Notes under the pieces: model-generated
Told to the model about the DNA's origin: nothing
Databases searched by the model: none
What the model saw: the letters and a program-made list of their open reading frames with translations, nothing else
Shown: positions 440 to 50,943 of the stretch, piece after piece
How positions within the stretch are numbered: position 1 is the first letter of the stretch
Layout of the letters: every line of letters begins with the position of its first letter
Position numbers and translations under genes: made by a program
Source of the DNA: Chara braunii
Lineage: Eukaryota > Plantae > Charophyceae
Length of the DNA: 53,911 bases
Assembly (NCBI GenBank): GCA_003427395.1
Contig: BFEA01000002.1
Location: 2,122,100 to 2,176,010 of the forward strand
Direction: 5' to 3'

Positions 440-1133
440 GATTCGTCAGTCATGTTCTTCTCGAGTGGACTTGCAATATGTCCATACATCTGCAAGGTGT
501 CTGAAGAGAAGTATGTGTAAGAAGGAAGTGTTCAATTTGTAAATGCCCAGACCCTGGTCAAGCTTTTTTCGGGCATTAGTAATATGGCACACATCTTGTG
601 ATCGGCCCCTGGCCATGGACTTATAGCAAGAACCACTGCCCTTGAAGGACCCTATCCAGGTCCTCTGACAAAGGATCAAGTCGATGTGTGATTTAGTTAG
701 GTGCGGTGTATTTAAAAAGCAGGTGAAAAGTCTTTGTTGTGGGTGTGACCCACGGAAGGAGTCCGCCTTGTGACAAGTTGTCTTCCGTAACCGCGCTACT
801 TTCTGCGCGACATTGGTTTGGGGAAATGGGACGGGTCAGAGGGGGAGCAGTGAAAAAACGTGTCGGTCGAGCAAGTTGCATGGATACCCCCGTTTCTTTT
901 GTTTCTATGGGCGTCGGTCGGGTCGGTATCAGGAAAGTCTCACGCCGACGATTGAGTAACCGTGCCTCAGCGAGCGTGATGGACAACGGTTGCCATGACT
1001 TCTTTCTTGTTCTGCTGTGAGCACTAGAAATTTTAAGCGAGATTATCGCACGGGAATATCGTTTGTAAATTTTCAACTGATGTCGAGATCCTACAGGTTT
1101 GAGGAATTGTTTGTGGGTTTTTCGAAATTTCAT
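440..1133 (-). pseudogene. Degenerate antisense ORF of unknown function (cassette A)
   Basis: The 146-aa ORF 693..1133 can be read on in frame through a few TAA/TGA stops (..FKYTAPN*ITHRLDPLSEDLDRVLQGQWFLL*..). No recognisable domain. Confidence 0.3.
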
Positions 1134-1140
1134 TTTGCAA

Positions 1141-1482
1141 TCAGGACTTAGACGAGGAATTTAGGCGCTCCAAATTTTGTTGCGCCCCGCTTCTCACTTG
1201 CGCACACTTTGCTGTATTGGGAACTGGGCTCCGACTGGATCGCGCCTTTAATCTTGTGTAACTGTCGTTTTTGGCCGACGCGATTGTAACTGTATCTTTC
1301 TTCTTTCTTGATTTCCTCATATTTGCCCGCCTTCTTCTTCTTTGTCTTGCATGCTTAATACTCCGTTCTAATTGGCTTGAACGCATGTATGACCGGATCG
1401 GTGCACGAAGAGTGGCTACGTCCCCCACGCTGCAGCCTGACCATGCAGACGTAGGCACTTCCTCTTTTCTCCTCCTGACCAC
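1141..1482 (-). CDS. Small Arg/Lys-rich ORF (cassette A), possible positional paralogue of 14892..15332
   Basis: ORF track. Very basic, with weak collinear similarity to 14892..15332 (KNDSY/KKNSY, PN, ERL/QRL near the stop). Confidence 0.3.
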   Translation of the reverse strand: MVRRRKEEVPTSAWSGCSVGDVATLRAPIRSYMRSSQLERSIKHARQRRRRRANMRKSRKKKDTVTIASAKNDSYTRLKARSSRSPVPNTAKCAQVRSGAQQNLERLNSSSKS

Positions 1483-1783
1483 TTGGGCTTAATCCCGTAT
1501 CTTTCGCGCAAGCGCGCATGATATAAATTTTGCAAGCGCGATTAGTTTGCTCTCTATGAACTTTGGAGTTAGTGCGATAAATGAGGGTCGGCTAACGAGT
1601 CAACTTGAAGAGGTGAGTCGACAAGAGAGTTGGGCGATCCAACGAGCTGGTGTCGGGTATGCGGGGTTGACGTGCGGGCCGCGACGGGCTGTGGCGCACG
1701 GACGAACCTGGCTTGCATGCTCGAACCAATCAGGGTGACAACTCTATGTTGATGCGTGGCGACGGACTGTCCGCATCAGGGAG

Positions 1784-1785
<2 letters not shown>

Positions 1786-1856
<71 letters not shown>

Positions 1857-1921
1857 NNNNNNNNNNNNNNNNNNNNNNNNNNNNNNNNNNNNNNNNNNNN
1901 NNNNNNNNNNNNNNNNNNNNN

Positions 1922-1979
<58 letters not shown>
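1786..1979. repeat. (GA)n microsatellite spanning an assembly gap
   Basis: GA runs on both sides of an N run. Confidence 0.97.
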
Positions 1980-1981
<2 letters not shown>

Positions 1982-2600
1982 CTATGTGTGGGATGAGGTC
2001 TCTTCTGCCAATCATCTGTATATTTTTTATCTCTATTTTGGCCGATCTTGTTGCAGCGCTTTCGGGCTTCTTCTTGTACATCGTTTCGAGTTTTGTTTGT
2101 CGTTTTGCCTCGTGTGTATGCATGGAATGGATGCGAACCCTCTTCGAGTGTTTTTTTCAGATTTTTAATCATGTTCTGCAATGCCTGTTTAGTTCAAATT
2201 TTGTCACTTTATAGTATCCATCTGCGTCGTGCAATAATCCCGGGTCTGATTGGAAGCACTCGCTATGGATGTTTGGGTTTAATCGTTAGCTTTGATCGTC
2301 AATGCTGTGAGGTGTTGGCCCTTGATGCTTTCTCTTCGTCGCATGAATGGCATGGATGTGAATGCAATGTCTCGATCCCACCTGAAATAGTACTATGGGT
2401 AGGATAGTTGCATGCAGGTAGGACACAACCAATACACCGGCGCGAGGAACCCGCGGCTGATCAGCTTCCGCTCATGTGCACGCTCGCGTACGACCGTGAT
2501 CTCGAGGAAACCAAGTCGCAGCGTACGTGCGCGTCTGCATGAGTCGACCTCGATCTTGACTCATTATGAGGATGCGGGAGACCGAGTTCACTAATCGGAT

Positions 2601-3119
2601 ATGGCTGTAAAACCCCCCTCTTGGATCACCAATCGTAAGAGTCTAACGGACCCGGAGTATCGCGAATACTGGGGGGGTGAACAACTCAGACGGTGGGGAA
2701 ACTTGAGAAACCAGGAATTCCCTTGTTCGACGGAGAACGACCGACTGTGCGCAGGGCACTTTCACTGGGCCATAACCAACGATCCCCGGGGCCTGCACTA
2801 CCCGAATACTAACAACACCCAGTATTACATATCTTCGGGCCTCGTCGTTATTAATTCAAGTTTTCCTCCCTTCCATCTCCTCCTCCCCCACCATCAGCCG
2901 ACAGTGGTACCATGGAATTCCATAGCTCGCTATTGGGCCCCCACACCATGCGAAGAGTGTCGGCAGCACCAGGTGTATCGGACTTCGGGATTTATCCGAC
3001 GAACCCGAGCGAAGGTCGAGCGGCGCCGACAGCTGTTCGAACAGCGCGACAGCCATAGCGACCCACCGGTCCACCAGAGACGGGACCAACCGCGACGACG
3101 ACACTCATACCGTAGGTAG
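2601..3119 (+). CDS. Uncharacterised 172-aa CxxC-containing protein (cassette A), paralogue of 16663..17037
   Basis: Intact ATG ORF. GLVVINSSFPPFHLLLPHHQPTVVPWNSIARYWAPTPCEECRQHQVYRTSGF aligns with GFVIIDTHFPPYSLLLPFNELIVIPWSAVWPKTLCSDCQRFDHYQSKGF in the second copy although the DNA is visibly diverged. Confidence 0.7.
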   Translation: MAVKPPSWITNRKSLTDPEYREYWGGEQLRRWGNLRNQEFPCSTENDRLCAGHFHWAITNDPRGLHYPNTNNTQYYISSGLVVINSSFPPFHLLLPHHQPTVVPWNSIARYWAPTPCEECRQHQVYRTSGFIRRTRAKVERRRQLFEQRDSHSDPPVHQRRDQPRRRHSYRR

Positions 3120-5400
3120 CCCGGTCTCCCGAAGTCCAATATAACTCGGGACCACCATCTTGCTCAACTACCCCTAAGCTTGCCACCTGAGATCTCAGTT
3201 TTGACCTGGGACTCCACCCCCACTTTCCTAAAATCCTTGCCACACCCCTCTTCGCACTTTCGGGCCCCCTAACACTCCGAAACAGGAAGTTGCGCTGGGC
3301 GTGAGGTTGGTATCGGAGCTGACACGTGTCAAGACAGAGGATTGACAGGTGGTCTGGCTCCTCCAGTCAACGAATTTGGCGAGTCCTAGACGGGGACGAG
3401 CTAGACAGAGAGACGCGCGGACGCGCGATCCGATAATAACTAGAAGTCTCTCCGCTGGAAGACAGGGGGGTAACATGAATGCCAATTAGGTGCAAGGTGG
3501 GGCGAACCAACCGAATTTGGCTCCCCCGCAGCCTCCACGTGCTCGCGCCCCAGCCACCCCCCCCTGATTTATAACTATTTGATCCTGCACACCACTTGGC
3601 AGGAGCATGGCTTGCTACGCTGTCGGCGCGAATACCCTTACAAGGGTATCCGCACAATTTAAGGTGCCCGTGTGGATTCGTTTCCTTTGTGTTGATCAGG
3701 GAGTTGGTGTAATTGACGGACTGATTCTTAATCTTCTTTGATTAAACTAGGGATTTTTTTTTAAAGGGTCCGCCTCTTTGCCTGGCGTGTTGAATGGCGG
3801 TAGGCTTGGCGCATGGAATGACATGCGTGGTGACCACTGTACGATTGGGGCCCACCGACGCGGACGTTTAGTGGCCGTAGGTACAAATGCAGACTGAGGA
3901 ACGGCCCAGGGCGCTTCTTGGCCCTGAGCACTGCGCAGCAACACTTCATATAGGATTTCTCGCCTGTTTGTTTTAGGCTTGGGCTTAGCCCTATAGGTTA
4001 CGACACTGGATTGTTATTGCGGAGGTGCGAGGATCGACACCAACAGGCGATAACGTGGGAGCGACGGAGGAGTGAAGGAGCTGAGGGGTTGAGGGGTTGA
4101 GGGTCCTACGAGACTATTATCCCCCTTAGTTTTGTTGGGGGAATCCGAACGTCGGCCCGCTTGTTCGAATTTCTACTGATTTTTATTTTTTATTTTTAGT
4201 CTATTTTGGGCCGGTACCGGTTCCGAGCCCGGGCCGAGGGTCCATGAGCGTGACACGAGGGGTAAGCCTTCGGACTGTTGGACTACGGGCCCGCACTCGA
4301 ACTCGGGGGATGGTGGATTGTGCCCGGGCGGGGGCACCAGGGTCTTGGCCGTAGTGCCTAGGCTGTTGTTCGCAAGGAACCGAAATTGCCTCAACTTCGG
4401 TCTTCGGGGTTCTCATTCGAAGATTTACTATTATCACCAAGATCTGCACTGGGGCCTGCGTCACCGGGCCCGTGTTTCAGGTTGTGCAGCAGGCCGCGCC
4501 CTCCTACCCTTGGCGCGCTCAGGCGCCATCCGCTTTCGGGGCTGATAGAGTCGGCAGGTGAACTGTACTATTTCCTTGGCAGATTTCGACTCCCATTATC
4601 GCTGACCGACTGACTGAGCCAACCGGAGTGAGGCGGTGCCTGGGATATCGCGCAGAATAGCGCACGGGGAGAACAGGCATTAAGGGGGAACAGGCCGGGG
4701 GTTGGACGAAGTGACGAGAGGAAAGGGAAGAGTGGTTGGACCCGGACGGGAAGGTGTGGTGGGTACAGGCAGAGCGGGGTGCAGAGGTAGACACAAAGGG
4801 AGAGAAGGCCAAGGATGAATCCGGGCACGGTTCCTCGCTAGGTACTGGCGACGAAGGGAGATGGCGAATAGTGAGTTCGGCGCAGTCAGAAAAGCTAACT
4901 CGCCCGATCCTTAGCCGAAAGAGGCGAGGAAGGAGGCGTTTTAGGGCTTTTAAGGGAGGGCGAGTTCAACCATGAAGCTAGTTTTCAGAGTAAGTTGGTA
5001 GAAAGAGAGGTGGAGGGAAAAAAAAATCAGTGCGCCGGGATATGGAGGCCCTGATGAAAAGGAAGAGGGAGACGACTATATCTCGACCGATTCTTGACGA
5101 ATTCGGGCGGGATAAAGTGTTAGTTTGAGGTTTTTGGGCAGGGCGATCTCGATGGTATAGTTAGTTCTGAGAGTAGTTTATTAGATTTAGAGTTAGTAAG
5201 AGAATAGTTGTGCGGAGAGATAGTGAAGACAAGTATGGCAGGGCGTTGAATGCATTTGGCCGAGTTTAGCGGAAATGTTCGTAGTTTCTTTTGACCGCTC
5301 TGATGAACTCCGGAGATGCAGCATAGCCTTTCGCGTTCTAGTGAGAGCTTCATTGCGGATTTTCTCACGTTGTGAAGGAGAAAACGTATGGGCTGGTCGC

Positions 5401-5473
5401 AGGCAATCGAGTGAGTGAGCACGGCGGGCCAGTCGGAGGCAATTGAGTGAGTGAGCACGGCGGGCTCAGTCGG
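5401..5473. repeat. 36-bp tandem duplication
   Basis: aggcaat(c/t)gagtgagtgagcacggcgggc(t)cagtcgg occurs twice in tandem. Confidence 0.9.
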
Positions 5474-7549
5474 GTGTCGTGATATGCCCGCGCCTTACCA
5501 TTTGGAACTGGCCTGCAGGGGCACAACGGGCGATGTGGGATGAACCGGAGCTTTCGCCAGTAAGCGGCTAGGCTTGCTTCTTCGGACGACCTTGAGCAAG
5601 GCAGGAAAAGATAGCGGGAGGGGTGAACCTGGTCGTGGACCTTGCCAGGTGCGCGAGGAGTGAGACTGGAGATGGTGGGGAGACGAGCCAAGCATACTAA
5701 AGAATAGATATCTCGCGAGATTCTCGATTGGATCGGGAGATGCAAATGTGGAGGGAATGCGAAATAGAAGCCCCACTCGTTCCATAGTGAAATCGAGCGG
5801 GAGAAAATGCTAAGAAAGAACTTTTTGAAGGTCAGTGTATATCTCTCCGTTTTTGTGAAAGATTCGTTCGAGCCTGTTGTTTCGACCGCTGGAGACGGTG
5901 GGAGGACAACTGCAGAGTGAGGCACTTACCTGGCTGGGGCGCATCCGCAATCGTGGTGTCACGGGTCGCCTCCTCCTGCCACGTAACCACAGGGCTGTTA
6001 TCGGTGGAAGACTCGCTAGAGGGCGAATGGCCGTCTGCAGGCGTTCGTTGAAAGTATAGCGTTGCCATTGCCTCCGTGATCGTCCCCATCCTCGGACCGT
6101 AGTACTCCTTGCGGTAGAGGCGTTCGGTGGGAGGTGGGAACCAACAGGTGCGGGGTTAGAGACTTACCTGAGTACGGTGCGCTGCCCAACCCACCGATAG
6201 GAAGGAGAACTCACCTGCACAACCCGAGCCAAACCTCGAATGAATCTAGCTCGTGTCCCAGCGGCGGGTTCATCCTGATCCATGCTGCCAGGGCAAAACG
6301 GTTCGCCCAGCCAATACAAATTCAGCTCACCCGCTAGTCTGAACGCTGCCTGTTTGCTCGCTGGTGAAGGAACTGAAGACTGCTCGTCCGTTGTACAAAG
6401 CAGAGGGCGTGAAAGGGGACTTACCTGCTGAGCCAGTGAAACCACTTATCTTACCAACTGGAGTAGCAGAGATCTGAGCTGCCTACCTAACCGCTGGCCA
6501 GCACACTGTTCGCTGTTGAACGAGAGGGCGACAAAAGAGCGGGTTACGACATTGAAGCTTGCATGTCAGTTTGAGCGTGTTCCAGCCGAATCGTTGGACT
6601 GAGGCAGATAGAGTGCAGGGCTGGCAGCGGACTGACGATCTGTTAAGACTTGATAGGAACTGTTCGGCCAAGCAATCGTCGCCTACCACGCTTGCAGTGT
6701 GGCCAGCCAAGTCGCACTGATCATAGAGGAGAGGGGAGCAGGCTGCGAAGTGGCAGCCTCCTGTGCTGCCCTTTTGGTGTGGGATCCACAACTTTGCCTC
6801 GGCTGCAGTACTACAGCAGCGGTTGCTGAGGCTACCACGGGCTACTGCACTGCCTTGCGTACGGCTGTTCGGCGCCGTGTGATTGCAGTTGGACTACGGG
6901 GAGTAAAAGTGTGTTGTAGGGGGAGTGATCGGGCTGCAAGAGGAGATAGTGCCGCGAGTTGGAGGGGCGTCAGAGGGTCAAGCAGTTAGCAGTTTGACTT
7001 CTGTCTGATTAAGCTGTCGCTACATCCTGACCATCATTGCGGGACCCTCAGGCGCGTCAAGATTTGAAGGCCCTCTCTCGCGAGTCTGAGTGCACCCTCC
7101 TTGGATCTGAGAGTCCGAAACCCCTACTTTTGCCCTTCTTGCTCTAAGTCTAGTCTATTGGTTCTGAGAGGAAGGCGGCAGGCGGGATTGCAACCCGTAG
7201 GTCCGCATCAAGGCTCTGTGGGGAGTCAACCCACCGATTGCGGGAGCTCTACCGGAACTCGGGAGGAGTTCTGGAGGCAGGGAACTCAGAGGTAACCATT
7301 GTTTTCCCTTATAAACCCAATATAGCCCCTATCTGTACAACGCCCTATGTATTGACTGAGTGTTTTGCATACACCCTACTTTGACCTTAGCTTGACTTTC
7401 AGGACATAAACCAGAGTAAGTAAAGGAATGTGTGTATAATGACAGTTTCAGTTTTTTTCGTTGTCTGGAAGCAGATTGTAACAAGGGGTTGCATCAGGGG
7501 GAAGGTTGGGAGAAAGGAACTTTTGCTTGTGCTTGAACATGTCTTATAT

Positions 7550-8390
7550 GGTCAGACATTGTTTCTCAGATGAATGACCTGACTGCTGTGTTTTGTTCTG
7601 TTTTTTTAAGGGTCATGCATTGTTTCTAAGACGAATGGCTTGGTCGCTGTGTTTGTTTAATTGTCCCAGGCATTGTTTCTAAGATGAATGGCCTGACTAT
7701 TTATTCTGAGGGTTATTGATTGCTTGAATTTTAAGGGTCAGACATTATTTCTAAGATGAATGGTCTGGTCGCTGTTTATTTTGAGTGGTTTCTGAACAAT
7801 CTCTGGGTCTTGACCCAGGGTACTCTGTTTTTTTTTTATATATGCTGAGAAAAAGGGGTTGAGCATTGTTTATAAGACGAATGACTCAACTCTTTTGATT
7901 GTTTTATTCTGAAGGAGGTTCAAGCCAAAGGACTAGACATTGTTTCTAAGATGAATGGTCTAAGTCTGATGCCACAAAACTATAATGAGAACAAAGGAAT
8001 ATGATTCTCTATAATTCTATCTATCTATCTATATATACATATGAGAACAAGGCTAGCCAAACATTGTTTCTAAAACGAATGATATGACTATAGCCTTACC
8101 ACAAGTGAAGAGAGTATAACTAAGAGTTATAATTGAAGGTAACTTGGACAGGATGAGCATTGTTTCTAAGACGAATGGCTCAGCCCTACGCTCACTTCTG
8201 AAGATTAAGTTCAAAGAAATATATATAACTTGGCTATTTAAACAGTTCAGGGCGACTAAGCATTGTTTCTGAGACGGATGACTTAGTCATATGCCCAAAG
8301 AAGAGAGAAGTAGTTGTGCAACCTGTTCGTGTATAACTAAGGCAAAGAGTTGACATTGTTTCTAAGACGAATGACCAAGCTCAATGCCCT
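7550..8390 (+). repeat. Array of 10 conserved stem-loops (core CATTGTTTCTAAGAYGAATG) with variable spacers
   Basis: Cores start at 7557, 7618, 7671, 7743, 7864, 7938, 8062, 8158, 8261 and 8354. The flanks differ between copies but are self-complementary within each copy. Confidence 0.92.
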
Positions 8391-8694
8391 ATATAAGCAG
8401 GGTATAAAGGGTTAAATCATTGAGAGACTATGAACTATTGTTTGCCAAAAGGTAATTTGGGTTGGTGAGAGTACTTACCCTTGTGGTTTGGCTTGCATCT
8501 GGCTGAGTGAGATTACTACCTAGTCTGAGTTTCAGTTTGATAGGTAGTTGCTTTAGTGACTCGCCACGTGCTAGAGCGATAGGAGTTAGATTCAATTCCT
8601 GTATTTTCTGTGATAGCGTTTTTTTAATTAGATCAATTCTCGCATTGTTTTAGATCATTTAATCTACTTGGGCTTGTATAAATTTTGGTAAGTC

Positions 8695-9003
8695 ACTTTT
8701 CCTACCGGAAGCGCTGCCGAAATTTCTGCAAATCCAGGGAGTTGGTCAAATTTTGGCTTTCCAAAGTTCAAACTTGTCTGACTTTCATACACAACTTAGT
8801 AAAAATCTGGGAAGTCTCATTTTCTAAAGGGAGTGCTGCCCAAATTTTTGCTAATTCAGGGAGTTAGACAAAATTTGACTTTGGGAAGTCAAAAACTATT
8901 TTTGTTTTCATATTTCGGCTTATATAAATTCTGGACGGGCACTTTTCCTACGGGAACGCTGCCGAAAATTCCCTAATTTAGAGGAGTTAGGCTATATTTT
9001 GAC
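8695..9003. repeat. Degenerate ~123-bp tandem repeat, about 2.5 copies
   Basis: cacttttcctac.gga..gctgccgaaa.tt....aatt.agggagtt units at about 8695, 8818 and 8940. Confidence 0.8.
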
Positions 9004-10875
9004 ATGTGACGATTTTGGTAACCCACCCCGAATAGGAAGATCCTGCCAAAGACCTACCTTCTCTTTGGGCACTTTCTTAGAGGCAGACTCAGGCTTGGGT
9101 AAGTACAAACGAGTTGGTAAGATCGTGATATGAAGATTAGTCACCATGGACTTATAGGTTTAGCCTGGGAATTGGTCTATCTTGTGTTACAGACCCTCTT
9201 GATCGTTTGATTCAGGACTTGGACTAGTTTCAACTTGATCCCGCGAGGATCGCCTTCTGTTATCACTGATAACAGGTCGGTTGCCGATTCGTCGGTTTAC
9301 GACTCAATTCCAATTCACCCTCAATACTCAACCTAAAAGGCTTTAGCCCTGATGATTTTATTGTTTTGTTAAGGTTTCACCCGGACTTTTAATGAATGAC
9401 CATTTAACAAAGGTACTGAGTATGTAATTATGGTTGGTTGGATATGAGGCTGGGGCTTGCGTGGCTAAAGCGAGGGGTATGAGTATAGAGAGTGGTTGGG
9501 GTTGACTCCGTGTAATGCATGGACTCTTGTTTGACTCTTTGATGTGATTGCAGGTATGTTTTGTGATTAGGATTTTGGATTTGACTGCCTGCGATCACGC
9601 GTATATATATGGTTGTGAGGAGCCCCACTGTGATTGTGAGAAGTGATCGCCACATATTTACCCCCTGCATATATATACATGTGTACCTATGTTGGGAGTT
9701 CGCGTGGTCTGAAGGGCCACGCTTAAAGGTAAAAATTGAGGGTTGGAATCGAGGGAAGAAAGAAAGCGCCCTCTACATGGTCGTATGCTTCTTAGAGATT
9801 TCTTAGTCGGACGTTAGTTCTGGGCCTGGATTCGAGGTCCTTGTCCAGGACATCCCAGACCCTAGACTCTGCGGGGAATGGATTTTCCCCTGCGCAGAGC
9901 CTATCTGCCTTGCCCGTCGAGACACCCAACACTGAGGGCAGAAATGTCGCGAGGGCTGAACGGGATGTCCTTCAACCTTTCAATATCGTGAAGGGTAACC
10001 CATCACGTTATGATCCTTCAGCCATTCAATAGCGCGAGGCCGAAACTGCGATCACCGCGTATGACTAGCATCGCCGGCCGATGTAGGAAAGACTTGCAAC
10101 CGCGCAAAACTTTATATCAAAGTTTTGCGTGCGACGTTTCGCCGTCCTAGCGTCTAGAGTTATGGGATTAAGGGATTCATACCTATGCATGTCTGTTCAG
10201 GATCAATATAGGTCATTGGTGCCAATAAGAAAGGTCACCAAAGGTTGCGATTTTGGGATAGGGAGACCTTCAACCTATCCTTGCTTTTTAGAGTTAGTAT
10301 GGTTGGACGTTGTAGTCCGTGGTACCTGTCAAAGTCAAACCCCTTGACTCGCTGTCAGGCCGTAGGGGAAGGAGCTGGTCTCCAGGGCCATAAGAGGCAA
10401 TTGCCACCACAGGTATGAACCTGTGTACCACCCACTCTCCACAAGGTGCAGAAGAGGGTGTGGTTCTCAACCGCACCAAGCGGTTGTCCAACGTCGAGAG
10501 ATTGACCTTCCAGGCGCGTCTCAGCCGACACTTAAGTGTCCAATGCGACCCTCGAGACTAACGAGGGCCGCATGAGTATGGGTACTACATAGTACGCCAT
10601 CATGGCGACTGCTTGCGAACGATTGCATTGCTAGTCGATAGGGGTTAACCCTGCGTCCGCGCAGTTTTATACCAAGTCTCGTGCGCGTCGCCTATCCAAT
10701 TTTCACGTTGGAGAATTATGAGATGGTTACCAAGGGACTAGGAGCGTTGTCACATTGTTTGACGTATGTGTGTATGTGTTTTATTTTTGTGTCCGTAGTG
10801 TGGTGTATGCGTGGTGAGTGAGATACGTCCTAGTCGACTGACGCTGAGTCGCGCTTGGGACCTCAGCCCCCCAAG

Positions 10876-12312
10876 ATGTCGGTTCGCGTGCGGGTTCAAC
10901 AGAGGCGTAATACCTCGCGTGCCCCCTATGATACAGCGAACGAGAAATGCCCTCGGTTGGCCTACGCGGGGATACGCCCACCGAAGGGAGGTGACAACTC
11001 CCGTGAGGTGAAGGTAAGTCATGCCTCGCGTAGGCCCTGTCCTGTCATAGGGGCTCACGAGAGGTATGGCTGGCGCACTCGGCCGGAGCAGCTTGCGGAA
11101 CGTATATTCGCGACGAGGATTTAGACCAACCCTTGCGTGACGCGGCCGAGAGGGTCCCGCGCTGCCTTGTGCGGTGCCGGACCGATGCGCTCGACAACGC
11201 TCCGAGCATAACAATATGATAACGATGAAGCCAGTATCAATGTCCCCACTCGATTGGGCGGAGACGCGCACCATTGGTTTAGCATGTACACGTGGATTGA
11301 TGTTCCGACGTTCGAAAGAGATTTCTTACACCGATTTGACTATATTCATCCCGAACAGGTATTCTTCCTAATCAAATATCGGGTGCAGAAGCCGCTTTAA
11401 TCCGTAGCAGAATACCGAAGTCGATTCTACCGATTATTTATCAAATCACAGAGGGAAGAGACGGTTGGTAAGGAATTTTTCATCGACCGACTCCAAAGCC
11501 GAGCAATAAGGGTCAAATTGCGAAAGCAATTTCTGCCCATTACCCACAATTTACAACAAATAATGGATATCGCCGAGGAAATGGAGCGAAAGTTCGCTGC
11601 CAACTTCCTCAAAGGCGAGGATCATGTTAAAGAGGGGGATACGTCCGAACTTATACGAGCACAAATGGAGCTCGCTGCGCTGCAGAACAAATTCGAAAAC
11701 ATAGGCTTTGTCGCAGGACCCGCCACCTACCTGGAGCCGGTCGGGGTGCAGAAGTCAATGGCCAACATTACCATCGGACCACCTGTTATGGCGTCTCCGG
11801 CTCCCCCATCCTTGAAGGCCGAAGAACCCAACGCTATCCTAGAGCTAACACGAACATTGGTAAACCTCATGCAGGAAAGTAAGAGGGAACAACGAGAATA
11901 TAACGCCCGAATGGAAACACTACTCCGCTCGATGCGCCCCATTACGGTTCGAGCTACTCCCATGGGAACGGGGGACGCACAGGCAGCAGGTGTTGTCGCA
12001 ACCGGAACAGGGGCACGAGTCAACAGTTGCTACATGTGTCACCAACCAGGACACATAGCACGAGACTGTCCCAACCGACCTGCACCAGCCCGGATCGGAC
12101 CAGCGCCAGCGGCCGCAGCACCTATTGCTAACGGACCAGGAAGGGTAGCTACGATGGTAGAAGCGACCGACAGCGGTGCAGGCCCATCGGGGGTTACGAA
12201 GGAAGCCGCAGAGTTTATCGCACTCGACCAATATATATCGCTAGGATACCCGAGCCTCGGAATGATCGGGGCTATCCAACCTGCCCCTGACAATAACGAG
12301 GTCTCAGAATGA
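10876..12312 (+). pseudogene. gag: Gag with retrotransposon-gag domain and CCHC zinc knuckle, with in-frame stops
   Basis: One frame joins ORFs 10855 and 11518: LGGDAHHWF..FERDFLHRF..QKPL*SVAEYRSRF. Zinc knuckle CYMCHQPGHIARDC. Confidence 0.88.
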
Positions 12313-14789
12313 AGGCCCTCCCCGAGTGAAATGAAATCCGGAGGACCCGCGTTCGTTACGGAAGAAATCGATGTACTAGATATAGTGCGAGCACTGGATC
12401 ACCGCATCCCCCTACCGATTGGACACTTCTTGTCCATTTCCGAGCAAGGCAAACCGAAGACGGTTTGCCCTCGCCAAACTAACAGCCGCAAACGGAAAGG
12501 CCCCCGCCAAAGATCCGAAGTCGGATGAGCCGAGCACCTTGGAACCCGTTCGGATGGGCCTGATTCGAAAAGATGATCACTTCCTACGGATCAGGACCCT
12601 ACCATGGAGATCCGCGGAGTGTGACGTGGAAGTCTAGGGCAACCCCTATAGTGCAGTCCTCGACTCCGGAGCCGCGGTCCTGGCTATCTCCCTGCGGGTG
12701 GTCGAACAGGATGGAAGGCGGAAGGATGTGATTCCACTCGCAGAAGGCGATCATTTCGTCTCCGCTGATGAAGGTGAGATTCGAGTTGTCGGGAGGATGG
12801 CAAATGTCGCCTTCCGAATAGGAAAGGTCCACGCCTTAGGCGACGTAGTGGTCCTAAACGTGAACACGTACGATGTCCTCGTCAGATTGCCAGCATTCAC
12901 TGCCTTGCAGGCCACGCTGGACTTCGAGCGACGAGCAGTCATCCTCAAAAACACGGGAGGGAAGCAGTACACTGTTCCAATGTGCCTTACCCTCCGAACC
13001 ACCTCGACATTTGAGCGACAACGCCAAGAACCAGGTAAAACCCTACGAATGATGAGATGGCAAGAATCCATAGATGAATTGGACATTGAACCCATACCAC
13101 CATCATCCACCTCCGAGAGCGAGGAAGAAACGAATCCTCAAATTCTCGAGCTGGCACGGCAGATAGTACACTACCCGCTTTGACAAAAAACGACAAAAAC
13201 TTTCGTTTTTACAGAAAACATGCGGCGAACTAAAGCGCTAATTATGGGAGAACCGCTAGTGCATATATCTAGACTGGCCGACTCTTGGGAACCCCCTCGA
13301 ACCATATATGAGGCGGCCACTCCATTATTGCCAAGATACCATGACAAACGGTCCTTTTGCAATGTCTCGAAAATTCCTCCTAGTTCGTTGCTCACAACCG
13401 GGAAGGAAATCCGAATGTTATGGAAAGGCGCCGAGGACTGGACTTCGGAACCCCCTGGGCTATACGACCTCGTCCCGTTTGATATTGGACTGAAAATCAC
13501 GGAGAAAGTCGTGGACCCCTGGGATATCAAGGATGGTATTATCCCGGAGGAACACGTGGCAATTCGAGAAGAGGAAGCTCAGATGGTCACCACGGTCTTC
13601 TCTTGGCGCTCCGATAATCCGTTTATATCGTCCCCACCCAGAAAGAAGACCCCTGCTACCCGGATGAAACAGTTACCGGTCGTGATACGGGACTGTCACT
13701 ACGAACTGCACGTGCCAGAGTATGTGCCGGATGAGATACACGAAATCATCTCTAACATTTTGACGAAATATCAGGATGCGATTAGTGTAGAGGATGCGGA
13801 CATCGGATTGTCCCTAGTCATACATCACGAGATCCAGACTGGCNCCCNCCCGCCGATTCACTGTAAACCGTATTGATATTCGTTGATTGAAAGACGAATG
13901 ACCCTGGAGCGGATCAGGGAATTCGAGGCCAACGGATGGATTGAGCCCGCTACAGGACCGTGGTCTTTCCCCGTGGTCTTAGTCCCCCTAAAGACCGGAT
14001 TCATTCGCATTTGCATCGATTACTGAAAATTGAATGATATCACGATCAAAGATGTGTACCCCCTCCCTCGGATTGATGATTTTCTGGATGCGATTGGGTG
14101 TGCTAACTATTTTAGCAAGTTCGACATCCGCCACGGGTTCCACCACATATTGGTTAAGGAAGAGGATCGTCCAAAAACGACATTCGTACTGTTCGAAGGC
14201 ACGTGGCAATGAATTCGATGTCCTATGGGGATTTGCAATGCTCCGGCTACGTTCCAAAGAACGATTGAACGTGACTTTTCAGAACTTCGTTAACAAGACC
14301 CGGCTGACACAAGGAATGGTGAATTTTTGTGTCATCGTGTATATGGACGATATCCTGGTATACTCATACTCTTTTCACGGGCATGCGCAACATATCGAGT
14401 AGACATTTGGAGCGCTGCACGATGAGGGCTTTAAAATCGCCCTGGAGAAAAACGAGTTTTTCCTTTCGGGAATCTCGTTCCTCGGGTACATGGTGACTCG
14501 GGGAGGCTTACGACCAGACTCTCGGAAGGTGGACGTTGTTCGAGACGCGCCCACGCCCACGTCGCTGACACAGGTCTGAGCCTTTCTGGGTTTGGCGTCC
14601 TACTACCGCCAATTTATCAAAGGTTTTGCGGCAATCGCACGGCCTTTGACGAATCTTTTGCGCAAGGACCTTACCGCTAACCTGGGATGGGAAATGTGAA
14701 CGGGCCTTCTCCACTTTGAAGGAGGCCCTGGCCTCCGCGCCCATCTTTTAGTTCGCCTGGATCCTGGGAAGTCGTTCATCCTTATCAGT
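12313..14789 (+). pseudogene. pol: Pol: aspartic protease, long linker, reverse transcriptase, start of RNase H (frameshifts and stops)
   Basis: Protease SAVLDSGAAV at about 12650. RT motifs PWSFPVVLV, CIDY*KLN, YPLPRIDD, FSKFDIRHGFHHI, YMDD, FLGY and [12 protein letters not shown]. Confidence 0.93.
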
Positions 14790-15422
14790 GAGCGCGCTCG
14801 GAATTTTGTTCGACAGTTAGGAATTCCGGAATCAACGGAACGCGGCGCAACCTTTCGCGCACGAATGTTCTCGGCCTCGCCATGGAAGACTCTAGGAATT
14901 TTGTAGAAATATGGATAGGCGTTGGACTTTTTTTCTTTTCCCACGTCTACTTTTCGCGCTATATGGTGATTTCAATTTTTGAATTAGCGTAGGATTGGGA
15001 AAAACTGCACCTGTTTCGGTGCCCATTCTTCTTTTGCTGTTCGGCGCCATGCAAACGACCTCCCTCCTCCTTCTTTCCTGCGCCCCTCTCAGCGCCTTAC
15101 CTCGTGCGCACATGCTTTCTCGCCCTCTCCCCCTGTAACTGTTTTTCTTTCTCCCTCCCCGCGCGCGCCCTTTTTCTCCTTCTTGATCATCTGAATCTTG
15201 GACCCGTTTCGCGCTATCCTTCGCACTCCTCTTCTTCCCGCTCCAAGAACCGTGCTCGAAAAACCCGGTCGATCCTCTCTTCCCATCTAGCCAAGGAGAA
15301 GCGCCGTGTAAGAGAAGATTCCCACTACGCAACGATTCTGATTGGCTGAGATCGAGTTGTGAGGGATCAACATGGCTTTCAACGGGCGATTACTCTCAAG
15401 CCCTCCCTTACCCTCCTCTACC

Positions 15423-17037: not shown

Positions 17038-17639
17038 CTAAGGCCGTCCACGTCAGATTCGGAACTGTGCAACGTGCGGCGTCGGGAGTTAGTCCGAAAA
17101 CGATATACTAAGTACGTGCCCGCTCCCTTTCACTCCAAACGAAGAGCCGCGGCTCGGTGGGAGGTTCGACAGTATTTTCTGGATTGAATTCGAACTTTCC
17201 CGCGTCACGAATCCCGCGCGCACTCCTTCGTAACCAGCGTTGCAACCGACCGGTTCGCTTACTTCATCAGACCAACACGGGGGATTTCAGTTCTGTCTGT
17301 GTCCCCACACTCAATTTCCCAAAAAATCCTTGGCACACCCCATCTTGCTGTTTTTCAGGGCCCCTTTCCGCACCCTTATTACTCCGAACGGAAGACAGCG
17401 CGGGGCGTGAGGTTGCGCGTCACACGTGAGGCTTGGTAGAGATTGGGCATTGGGGTATAGGGTTGAGGCAGATAGGGTTGGGCCGCTGAAAGGCACCAAG
17501 GCAGGTGTTTTTCTCGGTCTGAATTCTCCTTTGAGCCAAGGTTCGAAAATAAAAGGGCCCTTTGAATTTAGTACTGCATAGATGTTTAGTTTCTTCCATT
17601 AGCCCTTTCGAGGCTGTTCCATTAGTACTCGGTGCAGTT

Positions 17640-26271: not shown

Positions 26272-26352
26272 GCAAGGTTGGGGGGTTTTGAACCCGCAAC
26301 CTTATACCACAATGCGCATTTTTAACCGGTGCTCTAATCACTGAGCTACATC
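26272..26352 (-). mobile_element. tRNA-derived SINE head or tRNA pseudogene with Pol III A and B boxes
   Basis: Minus strand reads gatgTAGCTCAGTGATTAGAGCaccgg...gcgGGTTCAAAACCccc. No convincing acceptor or anticodon stem. Confidence 0.65.
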
Positions 26353-26386
26353 AACTGGACCAAGAAGAAAAAACGTACTTACCTTT

Positions 26387-26388
<2 letters not shown>

Positions 26389-26455
<67 letters not shown>

Positions 26456-26985
26456 NNNNNNNNNNNNNNNNNNNNNNNNNNNNNNNNNNNNNNNNNNNNN
26501 NNNNNNNNNNNNNNNNNNNNNNNNNNNNNNNNNNNNNNNNNNNNNNNNNNNNNNNNNNNNNNNNNNNNNNNNNNNNNNNNNNNNNNNNNNNNNNNNNNNN
26601 NNNNNNNNNNNNNNNNNNNNNNNNNNNNNNNNNNNNNNNNNNNNNNNNNNNNNNNNNNNNNNNNNNNNNNNNNNNNNNNNNNNNNNNNNNNNNNNNNNNN
26701 NNNNNNNNNNNNNNNNNNNNNNNNNNNNNNNNNNNNNNNNNNNNNNNNNNNNNNNNNNNNNNNNNNNNNNNNNNNNNNNNNNNNNNNNNNNNNNNNNNNN
26801 NNNNNNNNNNNNNNNNNNNNNNNNNNNNNNNNNNNNNNNNNNNNNNNNNNNNNNNNNNNNNNNNNNNNNNNNNNNNNNNNNNNNNNNNNNNNNNNNNNNN
26901 NNNNNNNNNNNNNNNNNNNNNNNNNNNNNNNNNNNNNNNNNNNNNNNNNNNNNNNNNNNNNNNNNNNNNNNNNNNNNNNNNNNNN

Positions 26986-27074
<89 letters not shown>

Positions 27075-30068: not shown

Positions 30069-33000
30069 ATGGATAACCTTAGGGTGGTGTCCTTGAATGT
30101 TTGCAACCTTCAAGTTGGTGATACAACACACATATCCAAACAAACTGGACTCAAATCATGGCTCCACGATACAAGGTTAAAGTCGCACTGCTGCAAGAAA
30201 CAAAACCGAGTGAACATAAGGTATTAGAATTAAGCACTTTGTGAGATGATACTCAATTATGGGCTCCACCATGACCGATTGGCACCAAAAGTGAGGTATG
30301 TATTTTGATTCACAAACAAACATAAGCAACAATTATCGATTTCAGAGAACATATCTGGGATCGTCGGACCAGGGTAAAAATAGAATTGCATGATGTGGTC
30401 TAGGCAATCATAATGGTGGATGCCCCTACGGATAGATCATAAGTAACCAATTTTAGGAAAAAAAAAGATATCACACACACCAAATGTGGAGAATCTCTTG
30501 ATAATAGGAGATTGAAATTGTACATTAAATGACCTCTCCTCTATAGCTTCGCAGTTCAGGGGCATCACTTTATTCTCGAACTAGATCTCAACTATTTTTT
30601 TTTTCTAATTTAAGCACTGGGTCCAGGCCACATGCGGTACTCTGTTGCCTCAGTGAATCTCTTGGCAGGCGTCCATCGTCTTAAACATTTCCATGTCTTC
30701 TCCATGGTGGACCGGAACTCTTACCGACCTCACATTCATCTAGGACCCTCCATCTGACCATAGTTCACTCTCAACCTCTTTCAAAATGAGGTCTATGCAG
30801 ACTAACGGAAATGATATTTTATATTTAATATTGTCATATTTCGTGACTTTGGTGTCTTTAAATAAGTTAGAAAGTTTATAGGATCAATGACCTAACTCTC
30901 GTCATCTTTCTCCATCTTCGGGTGAATGGTGGGACACTGGAGTTGCGATCATCTCCAATATGCTTCGTGTTATCCGTCAAATTATAATAACTTAGAAACT
31001 AAGAGGATCTGTTTTTCAGAGCCAAGTTGGAAAAACTTGTGAAGATGATGAACCTCCACCTCTTCTTCATGCAAGTACGGGCTCAACACAATGATATATT
31101 GAAAACAAAGTAGAGCGTCATAGTGTATGAGAGAAGGACTAGAGAGTCATTTCAAAAGTTGTTTCCAGGGTGTGTAGCTCAAGGAATGAGGGTGTTGCAA
31201 CACCCTTTCTTTCCAGCAACTATGGTGGCGGACTCTTTGGACAAGATATGTGAGTACATGATTGTTTTCGAGATATTATTTCCTTTAGAAGAGTAAGGGA
31301 AGACCCCAATACAAACCTCTCTCATAATTCATACCATTGACAAAATGCAGAGTGTAGAACAAGGGACTCAAATCATGACCTATTTGATGGTCCAACCACG
31401 GAGGACGACCTGAAGGCAGTGATCATGGTTTTGGCTCCTCATTTACTATAAATATAAAATGTTGTATTGTTTCGAAATCCGCTTAGCTCCCGGATGTTTT
31501 ACGAGATAATTTATATTTTGAACAAAAAAAGAATCATTTTAATATAAAAAAATTGACGCCCTATTTCTCTATTGAACGTCTCATATGAAATTATGATGAA
31601 AACTCTAGCTACAAGCTTCTCTAATGTGCTGTCAGTCGTGATTGGTAGGGACCAAGCTGCCTTTGTGAGGGGGCGAACCAATTTTGAAATATTGTAACTG
31701 ATATAGAATCCTTAGAGATTGCTTAAAGAGATAAGCTTGACATGACCATCCTCCTTCTAGATTTAAAGAAGGCATATGACCGTGTGAACTAGGGATATGT
31801 GACGACTATACTTATACATCTTGGTTTCGACCCTAATTTTAGAAGATGGGTGATCGCTCTCTACAGTCCATCCACTGGCTTTTCGTCAATTACAATGAAT
31901 GGTAAAATATCTCTACAATTTTCCCTCACTTGATCCCTACGTCAGAGATGCCTATTGGATCCTCTTGTGTTTGTAATTAAGTAGGAGATGTTGGTTAATA
32001 ATATGCGACACCATCCTAACATCACCGTATTGAGGGTCAGGGATAAGGAATGTTGAGTCAAAGCAGTAGTTGATAAACTCCTTGAAATCAGAGAAACACA
32101 CAGACCTCCCTACAAGGCCTCAAATAGTGTTTGTCTGGGTCCTCAAACTTGTCAGAGTCAACAATTCATTAGAACAAGTCTGTGTTTGTTTTGTCGGCGG
32201 AGTACAAACTTGCTATTGACTTTGGTAATAAAAAAAGTCGAAGAGCGGGCGTCTAAATAGTGTCTAGGACTTTAAAGAGTTTTTATTAACTGCTCGAATG
32301 CAAAAGAGTATTTTCTTCAACAGAAAGTATCATAACGGATTTTTAGATGGGATACAACCCCCCATATATCTCTCTCTGGGAAAACATTGATGTTTGATAT
32401 AACGTTTTTTTCCCTTCATGACTGTTGAACATATAGTTGCTTAAATGAAGTAAGAGAGTTCCAGCACGTTTTCTTTGGAAACTGTTTGCCCAACTTGATG
32501 GTGGATTCATTTCCAAGGTGTTATGGGAGAACTTATTTTTCAAGGAAGGAAGGTGGACTAGGGTTTCTCGACCAAGTAAGCATAATTTAGTAATAATGGC
32601 CGATCAAGGCGATTTTTTACCAACATGATGACCATTGGACATTGATGGCAAATCAACTTTAGCATATGCATGAAGTCTCTCAAGAATGAAGGTCGTTTTG
32701 CCCCATCTGCATGTCAGACTCATTTTTGGAAAGACGCATCAAATCGACATTTTGGCAAGGGATTCTCCATATGTGGAATAAAGTGAAACCCGATATGCGG
32801 ACGAGGCCAGTGACCAAGGATGAGGTTATCACCCAACCACTGTTTGATAATCCCTTGATCAGGGATAACAGTGGGAATATGTTACCTACAAATACCAGCC
32901 CTGACTCTTTTTTGAGGAAGTGAATCGAATAAAAGGTTTTTATGGTAGCCAATATTTGGGATAACTATGCAGGGAAAGCATCTCACGAGTCGATCCTGAA

Positions 33001-33760
33001 AGCATCTCACGACGTTCACGAGAATTGAATGTGCAACCTCCCTCTTGGGAGGCAAACACTTAACCAAACGGCTAAGTGGACTGGGGTGAAAGTTAAGCCC
33101 CAAGATGAGCACTTAACCCCACCCCAGCACAGATTTCTCCGCGTCCCGGTGTACCCAGTCACACACAACCAACCACAGGTCGTCAACGCAACCACCACAC
33201 AATGTTTAACCACACTGCAGGTTGCTACGCAAATCGATGCAAGGAAAGCATCTCACGAGTCGATCCTGAAAGCATCTCACGACGTTCACGAGAATCAAAC
33301 GCGCGACCTCCCTCTTGGGAGGCAAACACTTAATCAAACGGCTAAGTGGACTGGGGTGAAAGTTAAGCCCCAAGATGAGCACTTAACCCCACCCCAGCAC
33401 GGATTTCTCCGCGTCCCGGTGTACCCAGTCACACACAACCAACCACAAGTCGTCGACGCAACCACCACACAATGTTTAACCGCACTGCAGGTTGCTACGC
33501 AAGTCGANCAACCACAAGTCGTCGACGCAACCACCACACAATGTTTAACCGCACTGCAGGTTGCTACGCAAGTCGATGCAGGGAAAGCATCTCACGAGTC
33601 GATGCAGGGAAAGCATCACACTTTGGGATAACTATGGTTGCCAATCTCAAGACTTAGGGTGGAATTGGAAAAGACTATTGGAAGTGAAAGAAAAAGTGGT
33701 AATGCTCATCGATATCATCCTGCTGGTTTGGTGTTACGTAGTTAGCTACGAGTGAGGCTG
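30069..33760 (+). pseudogene. Highly decayed L1 ORF2 (APE endonuclease plus RT)
   Basis: MDNLRVVSLNV, VALLQETK, IIGD*N and PSDH (endonuclease). RPISLLNVSY, DQAAFVRGR, LDLKKAYDRV and LRQRCLLDP (RT). DEVITQPLFDNPLI downstream. End is approximate. Confidence 0.85.
32970..33621 (-). mobile_element. Tandem 270-bp-unit insertion with a 15-bp target-site duplication
   Basis: TSD tttgggataactatg at 32955-32969 and 33622-33636. Unit period 270 bp. Several hairpins favour the minus strand. Confidence 0.8.
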
Positions 33761-39923: not shown

Positions 39924-40412
39924 NNNNNNNNNNNNNNNNNNNNNNNNNNNNNNNNNNNNNNNNNNNNNNNNNNNNNNNNNNNNNNNNNNNNNNNNNNNNN
40001 NNNNNNNNNNNNNNNNNNNNNNNNNNNNNNNNNNNNNNNNNNNNNNNNNNNNNNNNNNNNNNNNNNNNNNNNNNNNNNNNNNNNNNNNNNNNNNNNNNNN
40101 NNNNNNNNNNNNNNNNNNNNNNNNNNNNNNNNNNNNNNNNNNNNNNNNNNNNNNNNNNNNNNNNNNNNNNNNNNNNNNNNNNNNNNNNNNNNNNNNNNNN
40201 NNNNNNNNNNNNNNNNNNNNNNNNNNNNNNNNNNNNNNNNNNNNNNNNNNTATGGAGGGCAAACTAGGTAAAACAGGGTGCAAGGCCATGCCCCAACGAC
40301 GCAGTCCAAATTGCAAATTTGCACTTGGGCTTGATAGGGGCGATACACAAAGAATTAGGCCCAAAAGGGCATTCTGCTCTACCCAAATCTTTTAGGGGCA
40401 TTTTCGCATACA

Positions 40413-41531
40413 TGCAACAACCCATGTTATATGCCTCGTGGAAAAACTAAGGGCCTTGTCAGGCCACAACCAGGCCCAGGCCGAAAAGGGGAAAAAAACC
40501 CCAGCTAAAGATTCAGGGCCTGAGCGAGGTACAGTTGACAAAAGTCAACTGTCGGGACCCAACAGTCAAAGTCCAAAGTGGACCCAGCCCAGGCCGTTGG
40601 TCAGACGCACACACTTGTTTGTATGCAGGTACCCAGACAGCATCAGGACCAAGGGGAAATCTGCAACTGTACACCATCCAGGCCCTCGACTGTGATTAAA
40701 TCTGTACGACTGTGGGGAGGGGAGCCAAGGCCAGACAGCCTCGTCAAACACTACAAAGGGACTGGTCTCGAGGTGGTCAACATTCAGTCTTGCTATGCTG
40801 CTTGGACGCTGGCTCGACTCTGACTGGACGCTGGCATTAACACTGGCACGACGCTGGCGAGACGCTAGACGCTGGACTGTGGCAGCGTGTTGGCGCTATC
40901 TGCTCTGAGTGTCGGGCATTGCTGATGTGGCGCTGCCACCTGTCTACCTTGCTGATGTGGTGCACATCACTGTTCTGCAATGCTGATGTGGCGCATGCCA
41001 CTGGTCTACATTGCTGATGTGGCGCATGTCACTTGTCTACATTATTGATATGGCGTTGCCACTGGTCTTCGTTGGTGGTGTGGCGTATGCCAAATGTCTC
41101 TACATCTGTATACATGAGGTGAATGGTTGCGACAAGGAGGGAGATCGGGATCTGTGGATCATTGGGTTCAGATACTCACCTCAGGTTGACGTCGTTACTG
41201 TAATCCGTTGTTGTCTTCATGGTTTTCACGAGATAAGAGTGTCACGTGGCACTTTTGTGTGATCAGAGCTTATCAGACTTGTTACTATTATTGATTGATG
41301 ACGTGGAGGGAGAAGGAGTTCGAAGGAGTGGGAATGGTTGGACTTTTATCGTGTGGTCTTTGATTATCTCTTCCACCTTCTTCCTTGTCTATCCCCACTC
41401 CAATCTTTTCGTCTATTGGTAACGAGATACTGTTTCAGACCTCACTTCAAGTTAACTAGAGACTTCGGTGCAGATTTGAGACTACTTTTGCTTGATGTTT
41501 GATGAGTATCTGCCAGACTGGGTTGATTACA
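40413..41531 (+). repeat. 5' LTR
   Basis: tgcaacaacccatg...gattaca, a direct repeat of 50944-52092. Confidence 0.93.
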
Positions 41532-41534
41532 AAT

Positions 41535-41546
41535 TGGTATTGGAGC
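41535..41546 (+). promoter_or_regulatory. Primer-binding site, tRNA-iMet type
   Basis: tggtattggagc, 3 nt after the 5' LTR. The plant consensus is TGGTATCAGAGC. Confidence 0.75.
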
Positions 41547-42750: not shown

Positions 42751-42813
<63 letters not shown>

Positions 42814-42835
42814 TAGAAAAAAAAAAAAAAAGAAA

Positions 42836-42873
<38 letters not shown>

Positions 42874-42875
<2 letters not shown>

Positions 42876-50885: not shown

Positions 50886-50943
50886 GGTTAAAGGGAAACT
50901 GGTGCCTTTTCTTCGATGGACTCGAAAATTGGGCCGACAGGAA

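Follow-up and report, generated by a model that had tools for sequence, protein, structure and literature searches.

An array of ten hairpins with compensatory stem changes inside a nested insertion of the Chara braunii genome

We analysed a 53,911-nt stretch of the Chara braunii genome (contig BFEA01000002.1 of assembly GCA_003427395.1, forward-strand positions 2,122,100 to 2,176,010), called the window below. Its left part is occupied by a gypsy retroelement, whose leader between the primer-binding site and gag is split by a nested insertion of 7575 bp. Midway in this insertion, at 7550–8390, stands an array of ten hairpin units in one orientation, and a second, orthologous array is present in a metagenome contig (BFBZ01008522.1, here L001). 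An earlier note on the window, made from its letters alone, had described the ten units and ascribed them to the gypsy leader. The units are confirmed here and the ascription is contradicted.

The 20-nt core CATTGTTTCTAAGAYGAATG, sought with up to three mismatches, has 10 matches, all on the + strand, where shuffled sequence gives 0.01. The cores start at 7557, 7618, 7671, 7743, 7864, 7938, 8062, 8158, 8261 and 8354, and the start-to-start spacings of 61, 53, 72, 121, 74, 124, 96, 103 and 93 nt match those listed earlier exactly. When the copies are printed in register, the arms quoted for them are found in place: a stem forms between -7 to -1 and +2 to +8, and +1 is always a single unpaired purine. 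The units are as follows.

7550..7584, + strand: hairpin unit c1, core 7557-7576, arms ggtcaga / cctgact
7611..7645, + strand: hairpin unit c2, core 7618-7637
7664..7698, + strand: hairpin unit c3, core 7671-7690, with only 4 arm pairs, cagg/cctg
7736..7770, + strand: hairpin unit c4, core 7743-7762, where G5>A with U15 retains an A-U pair
7851..7896, + strand: hairpin unit c5, core 7864-7883, arms of 12-13 bp, minimum free energy (MFE) -18.6, z -7.0
7931..7966, + strand: hairpin unit c6, core 7938-7957, arms gactaga / tctaagtc with one A bulged
~8003..8020, + strand: decayed eleventh unit, aligned with unit u8 of L001, which has a TAAGTT-type apex; right arm lost
8051..8095, + strand: hairpin unit c7, core 8062-8081, inner arm degenerate, outer ggcta/tagcc paired
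8151..8185, + strand: hairpin unit c8, core 8158-8177, the sole core kept in its L001 orthologue (19/20 positions)
8254..8288, + strand: hairpin unit c9, core 8261-8280, 7-bp arms perfect; L001 orthologue with arms kept and apex deleted
8346..8382, + strand: hairpin unit c10, core 8354-8373

Within the array, conservation declines outward from the core. Pairwise identity averages 0.91 in the core, 0.43–0.45 in the arms and 0.26–0.32 in the outer flanks, the random expectation being 0.27. The spacers, which the earlier note held to be mostly unrelated, are in part related: units 1, 2, 4 and 5 have a common 61-nt unit and the two-unit block 7553–7650 is 75% identical to 7667–7775. Tandem duplication thus contributes to the origin of the array. 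The array is not a satellite or regular head-to-tail tandem repeat, as its spacing is irregular and Tandem Repeats Finder, run on 7000–9000, does not call it. The sole report of that program is a (TCTA)5 run, a microsatellite that occupies the expected right-arm place of the decayed unit (8003–8036).

The hairpin units are real and their pairing is retained via compensatory changes. A 15-pair structure for the ten units gives 150 pair cells, and 91.3% of them hold a standard pair. Within-column shuffles give 84.9 ± 1.4, with none of 500 reaching the observed value, and sliding the 3′ partner by 1–3 columns leaves 25–49%. Changes on both sides are seen in 8 of the 15 pairs. The variable stem has 57 paired cells out of 70, where independent divergence to equal identity predicts about 39–41 (star-tree simulation, P < 0.001). 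The earlier claim that differing arms still pair is borne out.

The surroundings of the array were compared with relatives of the host gypsy element. The features concerned are these.

769..3306 (start approximate), + strand: 5′ long terminal repeat (LTR) of the host gypsy, 77-82% identical to the LTR of relative L014; assembly gap at 1857-1921
3308..3319, + strand: primer-binding-site-like TGGTATCGGAGC of the host gypsy, identical to relative L012
3617..3621, no strand assigned: left target-site duplication ACGCT, from comparison with empty sites
3622..11196, no strand assigned: nested insertion holding the array, 7575 bp, with ends (T)GTCG...CGACA and neither LTR pair, terminal inverted repeat nor coding signal
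11197..11201, no strand assigned: right target-site duplication ACGCT, from comparison with empty sites
11197..14800, + strand: gag-pol remnant of the host gypsy with CCHC zinc knuckle and reverse transcriptase YMDD motif, frame changes, cut off near 14800

The gag-pol pieces were searched separately, with no translation through stops. The gag open reading frame (ORF) at 11518–12312, which carries the CCHC knuckle, has only 8 Chara braunii proteins as relatives at 53–58% identity, and the pol piece search gave 2 Chara braunii protein matches. None of these gag and pol relatives is closer than 69% identity over a part. Six Chara loci around them (L011–L016) served for comparison. In these loci the family has LTRs of 1.9–2.6 kb, TGGTATCGGAGC follows the LTR end and gag comes about 300–1000 nt later.

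The relatives match the window up to 3621 and then again from 11197, and both matches overlap by five bases in L012, L015 and L016. Aligned beside the uninterrupted sites, the window junctions read ...GCTTGCT ACGCT (7575 bp) ACGCT CCGAGC.... The empty sites in the relatives and the 5-bp duplication show that 3622–11196 is a later nested insertion. The array sits in the middle of it, and its placement between the gypsy primer-binding site and gag is accidental.

The array is not seen in the gypsy family either. The core with up to three mismatches has no match in L011–L013. Two covariance models, R1 built from the window units and R2 from the L001 units, have no match below E = 0.5 in L011–L016, loci of 53–58% gag identity, nor do they find further units elsewhere in the window. 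As far as the six loci allow a test, the linkage to the gypsy family that the earlier note had supposed does not hold.

The host gypsy itself (769–14800) is old and broken. Its gag-pol is spread over at least four ORFs via frame changes, with single N at 13844 and 13848, and it terminates near 14800 within the reverse transcriptase/RNase H part without a 3′ LTR. Another LTR-end fragment of the same family lies at 17276–17423.

The insertion is GC-rich at 3622–7295, AT-rich at about 7296–9780 and GC-rich again at 9780–11196. It fits a solo LTR or another non-autonomous element inserted by an integrase, because it is flanked by a 4–5 bp duplication (ACGCT, or ACGC if the element starts at TG), has TG..CA ends (TGTCG...CGACA) and shows no coding capacity. 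Neither an internal coding region nor a second repeat is found inside it, and no terminal inverted or direct repeats score above shuffled sequence. The size of 7.6 kb is unusually long for an LTR. The AT-rich domain was considered as a further nested element and rejected: no terminal inverted repeat, LTR or target-site duplication there exceeds shuffles, and L001 is contiguous across 7296.

Arg-rich accessory ORFs had been offered as possible binders of the array. They lie in GC-rich, non-coding-looking sequence and have no Pfam or protein relatives. Altogether 11 ORFs fall wholly or partly in the insertion and none has a Pfam match at E <= 0.01. One ORF of 102 aa has no word-sharing candidate in an index of 5.8 billion proteins, and the longest, of 186 aa, has 0 HMMER matches against 1.84 billion representatives.

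The insertion also contains a 171-nt near-perfect foldback at 8735–8905 (MFE -60.3 kcal/mol, z -6.3). It consists of inverted halves inside tandem repeats of about 122 nt (8665–8999), some 330 nt after TATA-like boxes at 8390–8409. Two sub-threshold plant MIR matches in Rfam, the only ones at E <= 1, fall on both strands of 8748–8897. For the inserted element, the foldback could be a sequence like a miniature inverted-repeat transposable element or the precursor of a hairpin RNA.

Exact-core scans gave 8 loci in the metagenome collection and 2 in the viral collection. Nine are bare 20-mer matches without arms and were taken as chance, four of them being one sequence seen four times. These four (L003, L005, L006 and L008) are large metagenome contigs with a common sequence, an exact core without pairing arms and a weak second match about 660 nt off; their core is taken as a chance match in an unrelated organism. 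Among the scan loci, only L001 is homologous. It is a contig of 2280 nt, matched on the minus strand, with an R1 score of 44 bits and new arms, agctgag/ctcagtc.

L001 is 77% identical to the window over 7035–7485 and 74% over 8044–8312, and weak colinear similarity extends further upstream. The first of these blocks is the segment upstream of the array.

7035..7485, + strand: segment upstream of the array, 77% identical to L001, spanning a sharp GC-to-AT switch at about 7296

Between the two blocks lies the array in the same unit order and with common spacer landmarks. The orthologous pairs are c1-u1, c2-u2, c3-u3, c4-u4, c5-u6, c6-u7, c7-u9, c8-u10 and c9-u11, and u8 aligns with the window relic at about 8003–8020. 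The window thus has 10 units and 1 relic and L001 10 and 1, the orthologue of c9 having kept its arms and lost its apex. All are on one strand and spaced by 53–124 nt.

The L001 hairpins are longer and more stable than those of the window, with MFE of -15 to -28 kcal/mol and z of -1.9 to -4.9. In the eight ungapped units, 86.7% of the cells are paired, as compared with 24–58% with slid partners. Both sides have changed in 10 of 15 pairs and no pair is invariant. Between c5 and u6, the compensatory changes within seven pairs include U-A>C-G, G-C>A-U and G-C>G-U.

The apex differs more. The window-type core is found only in u10, while in u1–u8 a stem of 3–6 pairs closes the hexaloop TAAGTT (for example CCCCA/TGGGG, TTCTA/TAGGG and TTCTG/CAGGG), and u9 is intermediate with TCCA TAAGAT TGGA. 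Core identity per orthologous unit is 95% for c8, 65% for c7 and 15–55% for the remainder. Nonetheless, when 20 units are anchored on the loop, 58 of 60 cells in the three loop-adjacent pairs are paired (shuffles 38.8 ± 3.4, 0/5000). The pair closing the hexaloop is A-U in six units, G-C in three and C-G in ten. The loop reads TAAGWY in 17 of the 20 units (TAAGTT in eight, TAAGAT in five, TAAGAC in four), the other three being single variants.

As the apex differs between the copies, its near-invariance is a property within one array, that of concerted evolution, and not of the element. The conserved 20-mer described by the earlier note is hence not kept between the two known copies. Within each array the apex has been homogenised, the arms and spacers have stayed orthologous, and the two arrays have the architecture and the loop in common.

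Some smaller observations concern L001 and the segment upstream. The motif TTGGWTCTGAGAG occurs at 7101–7114, 7158–7171 and 5161–5174, and its copies in the upstream segment are kept in L001. A 24-nt conserved string of this segment has no match in the genome or viral contig collections, and two ORFs of L001 have no protein entry on record. Three L001 loops match the 5′ splice site GUAAGU, and there is loop complementarity to the tRNA-Lys anticodon loop. Both are regarded as coincidence, being of 4–6 nt and not common to both arrays.

In L001, all 10 units fold better on the strand equivalent to the window + strand, with a summed MFE of -208.0 versus -134.1 kcal/mol and a mean z of -3.3 versus -1.8 on the other. 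In the window, the + strand folds better in 8 of 10 units. There, a 14-pair (triloop) structure is 90.7% paired on the + strand and 80.0% on the - strand, and the 15-pair structure has 21 G-U cells versus 6 A-C cells. All seven core substitutions at paired positions keep the + pairing, and four of the seven break the - pairing. The preference for the + strand read earlier from G-U positions is thus recovered. We find the bias convincing for L001, but no more than suggestive for the window.

TATA-like boxes lie on both sides of the array.

7310..7316, + strand: TATAAAC box conserved between the two copies and a candidate promoter, about 240 nt ahead of unit 1
8390..8409, + strand: two TATA-like boxes, TATATAAG and TATAAAG, immediately after unit 10

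The first box is at the GC-to-AT switch and reads cccTTATAAAccc and ccctcTATAAAcc in the two copies. If it is a promoter, the array would be transcribed on the + strand. Matches to TATAWAWR are frequent in the AT-rich domain, which has 16 of the 26 in the window, so the 8390 box is weak evidence; L001 ends before its site. An enhancer array of the LTR U3 type would be followed by its TATA box. The boxes at 8390–8409 do follow the array, but the doubly conserved one at 7310–7316 precedes it. An RNA polymerase III type-3 gene after the 8390 box was rejected, with no upstream sequence element and no Rfam match.

We tentatively favour a reading in which the array is transcribed and serves the inserted element as a module of many hairpins, with about ten equivalent sites for one partner specific to both loop and shape. 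This reading is drawn from the compensatory changes in pairing, from the bias in strand and from the conservation of both the loop and the upstream box. The array would be a cis-element of an unclassified non-coding mobile element, of which a 7.6-kb solo-LTR-like copy was inserted into the old gypsy leader. Each unit is a stem-loop of about 35–50 nt, in which a variable basal stem bears an apical one with UAAGWY as its hexaloop. Some ten such units are strung on one strand with unconstrained, often U-rich spacers, and would be part of a + strand RNA probably started from the TATAAA about 240 nt upstream. These equivalent sites may bind one partner, a protein of an autonomous relative or of the host. 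Short-tract conversion or selection would keep the apex uniform within an array and let it differ between element copies. In its full form, the model has a transcribed platform of about ten stem-loops, a dedicated partner that reads their UAAGWY hexaloop and shape, and an apex swept uniform in each element lineage; this form we consider unlikely.

Several points weigh against this reading. The array is known from two copies, the second being a 2.3-kb metagenome contig. Between these copies, identity is lowest in the cores (43%, versus 59% in spacers and 54% in arms), and a core less conserved than the spacers is as compatible with conversion or drift as it is with a core that co-evolves with its partner. 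The single window hairpins are modestly stable with z of -1 to -2, except for unit 5 (z -7.0), and over its entire 856 nt the array folds no more stably than shuffled sequence (z -1.2). The register of the window apex is ambiguous, for the ten core substitutions agree with a triloop fold (G5-C15, U6-A14, U7-G13 and U8-A12 atop CAUU/AAUG) and also with an L001-like hexaloop fold (U7-A18, U8-A17 and C9-G16 around UAAGAY). As to the strand, a single fixed wobble accounts for 9 of the 21 G-U cells. The first half of the array is rich in G+T on the + strand, the bias may be partly compositional, and the composition-controlled z in the window is nearly equal between the strands (-2.0 versus -1.6). 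The + strand transcription is one that we infer from the box at 7310. Moreover, template switching in replication can yield compensatory stems without selection (PMC8794818).

That last point belongs to an account in which the array has no function. The units would be tandem repeats of a dead element, in which template switching re-perfects the inverted repeats and conversion or unequal exchange homogenises them. Multi-base compensatory changes are documented in a single template-switching event (PMC8794818), and the non-coding regions of LTR elements are known sources of tandem repeats (PMC7004042). The common 61-nt unit of units 1, 2, 4 and 5 and the duplicated two-unit block agree with this origin, as do an apex uniform within each array and different between copies, the weakness of the window hairpins, the one decayed unit and the deleted apex in L001. 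However, about 20 units in two copies that are 25–40% diverged all keep the stem, and 17 of the 20 keep TAAGWY, with flanks at random identity. Template switching alone predicts neither G-U intermediates nor a consistent strand bias, and unequal exchange would hardly homogenise a 20-nt apex alone, leaving arms and spacers orthologous. We consider this account rather improbable. A DNA-level role is unlikely too, though somewhat likelier: the array would be a homotypic cluster of sites for one transcription factor, placed in a U3-like promoter that belongs to an LTR or solo LTR, as with the enhancer boxes repeated in many LTR retrotransposons, and the hairpin potential would be secondary to palindromes or cruciform-prone DNA. 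It would explain why loop and bulge bases are as invariant as stems within the array, as sequence-specific recognition predicts, and it is in keeping with the target-site duplication and solo-LTR-like ends of the insertion and with the motif turnover and homogenisation between copies, which are typical of regulatory repeats. Another LTR in the window (40917–41100) also holds six tandem 31-nt units with a palindromic motif. However, half-sites of a dimer predict no correlated arm changes, whereas the arms vary in sequence and in length (4–13 bp) yet stay complementary, and a G-U strand asymmetry is meaningless in duplex DNA. The two TATA-like boxes right after unit 10 would suit such a promoter, but strings of this kind are common in the AT-rich domain and the box kept in both copies is upstream of the array, not downstream.

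Two further accounts place the hairpins in the replication or expression of a retroelement. They may work in single-stranded form while the inserted element replicates, with RNA hairpins and their cDNA complements promoting strand transfer if the array lies in R/U5, or with the loop pairing to another RNA. If the TATAAA at 7310 is the LTR promoter, the array falls in R/U5, and conserved loops on variable stems suit loop-loop contacts. Yet R/U5 would then measure about 3.9 kb, an unusual length, the element has neither a second LTR nor a primer-binding site nor a polypurine tract on hand, and the hexaloop is not self-complementary. This account is very improbable. The proposal of the earlier note, that the array as part of the gypsy gag-pol leader serves packaging, dimerisation or export and is possibly bound by the Arg-rich ORFs, is contradicted and can hardly be maintained. 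The array does lie between the primer-binding site (3308) and gag (~11200) on the same strand, and the hairpins are real. However, the leader is uninterrupted in L012, L015 and L016 where the window has its 5-bp duplication, the core and both covariance models are not found in the related loci tested, and the insertion ORFs tested have no Pfam, word-index or HMMER relatives. Some known types of element were rejected as well, from inspection of the sequence: the units are too short for microRNA precursors and for a small nucleolar RNA cluster, of which the C/D boxes are not kept either, and the spacing is wrong for heat-shock or STAT-like DNA sites.

Rfam has no match over the array, over 3400–7600 or over L001 and none at gathering score in the whole window, so the array is as unrecognised as the earlier note had it. 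Full-text literature searches found no described equivalent. The array resembles the multivalent hairpin repeats of long non-coding RNAs in its would-be action and the regulatory repeats of LTRs in its location, and by the tests run it is a member of neither.

The Xist A-repeat and similar hairpin repeats such as the roX boxes consist of 7–10 copies of a short conserved core, predicted to fold into a stem-loop, with variable, often U-rich spacers on one strand. Repeats of the Xist type are thought to derive from mobile elements and form a platform of many equivalent sites for one binder. The present array likewise has multiple hairpin cores on one strand, variable spacers and a structure with compensatory changes, while its transcription and binding protein are only inferred. 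It differs in having no sequence relation to them, in lying in a mobile-element copy instead of a host gene and in the change of its apex between copies.

The tandem repeats in LTR U3 regions and in plant Ty3/gypsy elements (PMC7004042) are also short non-coding motifs near TATA-like boxes that are duplicated and homogenised. They are regular and act as DNA, whereas the array is irregular (53–124 nt), its arms covary and its pairing is strand-biased. The Drosophila gypsy insulator has 12 non-palindromic DNA sites for the zinc-finger protein Su(Hw) between the 5′ LTR and gag and is the element's own. The array is like it in having about a dozen short motifs with AT-rich spacers between a primer-binding site and gag, but its motif is unrelated, forms hairpins and was brought by a nested insertion.

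Packaging signals of retroviruses and retrotransposons and export elements of the constitutive transport element or Rev response element type are single or duplicated complex folds recognised by a specific protein. They too are structured cis RNAs in the non-coding part of retroelements, whereas the array has ten small equivalent hairpins. Repetitive extragenic palindromes and bacterial interspersed mosaic elements (REP/BIME), integron attC sites and CRISPR repeats of prokaryotes are short imperfect palindromes with a conserved part, covarying arms and unrelated spacers. The array is in another domain of life with other machinery and without associated genes, and its spacers, being partly homologous between copies, are not acquired cassettes.

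Elsewhere in the window, a nearly complete chromovirus-type LTR element with internal assembly gaps occupies 40412–52070. Its LTRs, at about 40412–41534 and from 50943 to about 52070, are 85–92% identical. It has a primer-binding-site-like TGGTATTGGAGC at 41535, internal tandem repeats of about 339 nt at 42901–43928 and an ORF for an integrase SH3 and chromodomain at 50465–51064. The six tandem 31-nt units at 40917–41100 are in its 5′ LTR, with the core CATTGCTGATGTGGCGC and the short palindrome GTGGC..GCCAC.

At 26330–26360, the window resembles a tRNA D-arm region when read on the opposite strand (window letters GCTCTAATCACTGAGCTAC). ARAGORN called no tRNA on this stretch, which may be a fragment of a tRNA-derived short interspersed nuclear element. 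Adjoining (CT)n runs (26391–27074) flank an assembly gap of 530 N. A 270-nt tandem repeat with 2–3 copies of 95–96% identity lies at 32967–33603 and overlaps a 200-aa ORF without significant Pfam match.

Compensatory evolution within one locus is unusually clear in the array. Its case also tells that location between a primer-binding site and gag does not prove membership in the element, and nested insertions are to be excluded first. Even if the array is functionless, the two orthologous copies are a clean case for how palindrome pairing is kept up and homogenised, by template switching or conversion.

If the array acts as RNA, it would be a compact natural multivalent hairpin platform in streptophyte algae, and the replacement of the apex between copies would point to a specific partner changing with the element. 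This would open a way to study the recognition of non-autonomous elements in a genome of 2 Gb in which LTR elements dominate. The full model, if true, would be a rapidly co-evolving system of RNA-protein or RNA-RNA recognition without a described example among plant or algal transposons, and an independently arisen natural counterpart of the Xist A-repeat architecture.

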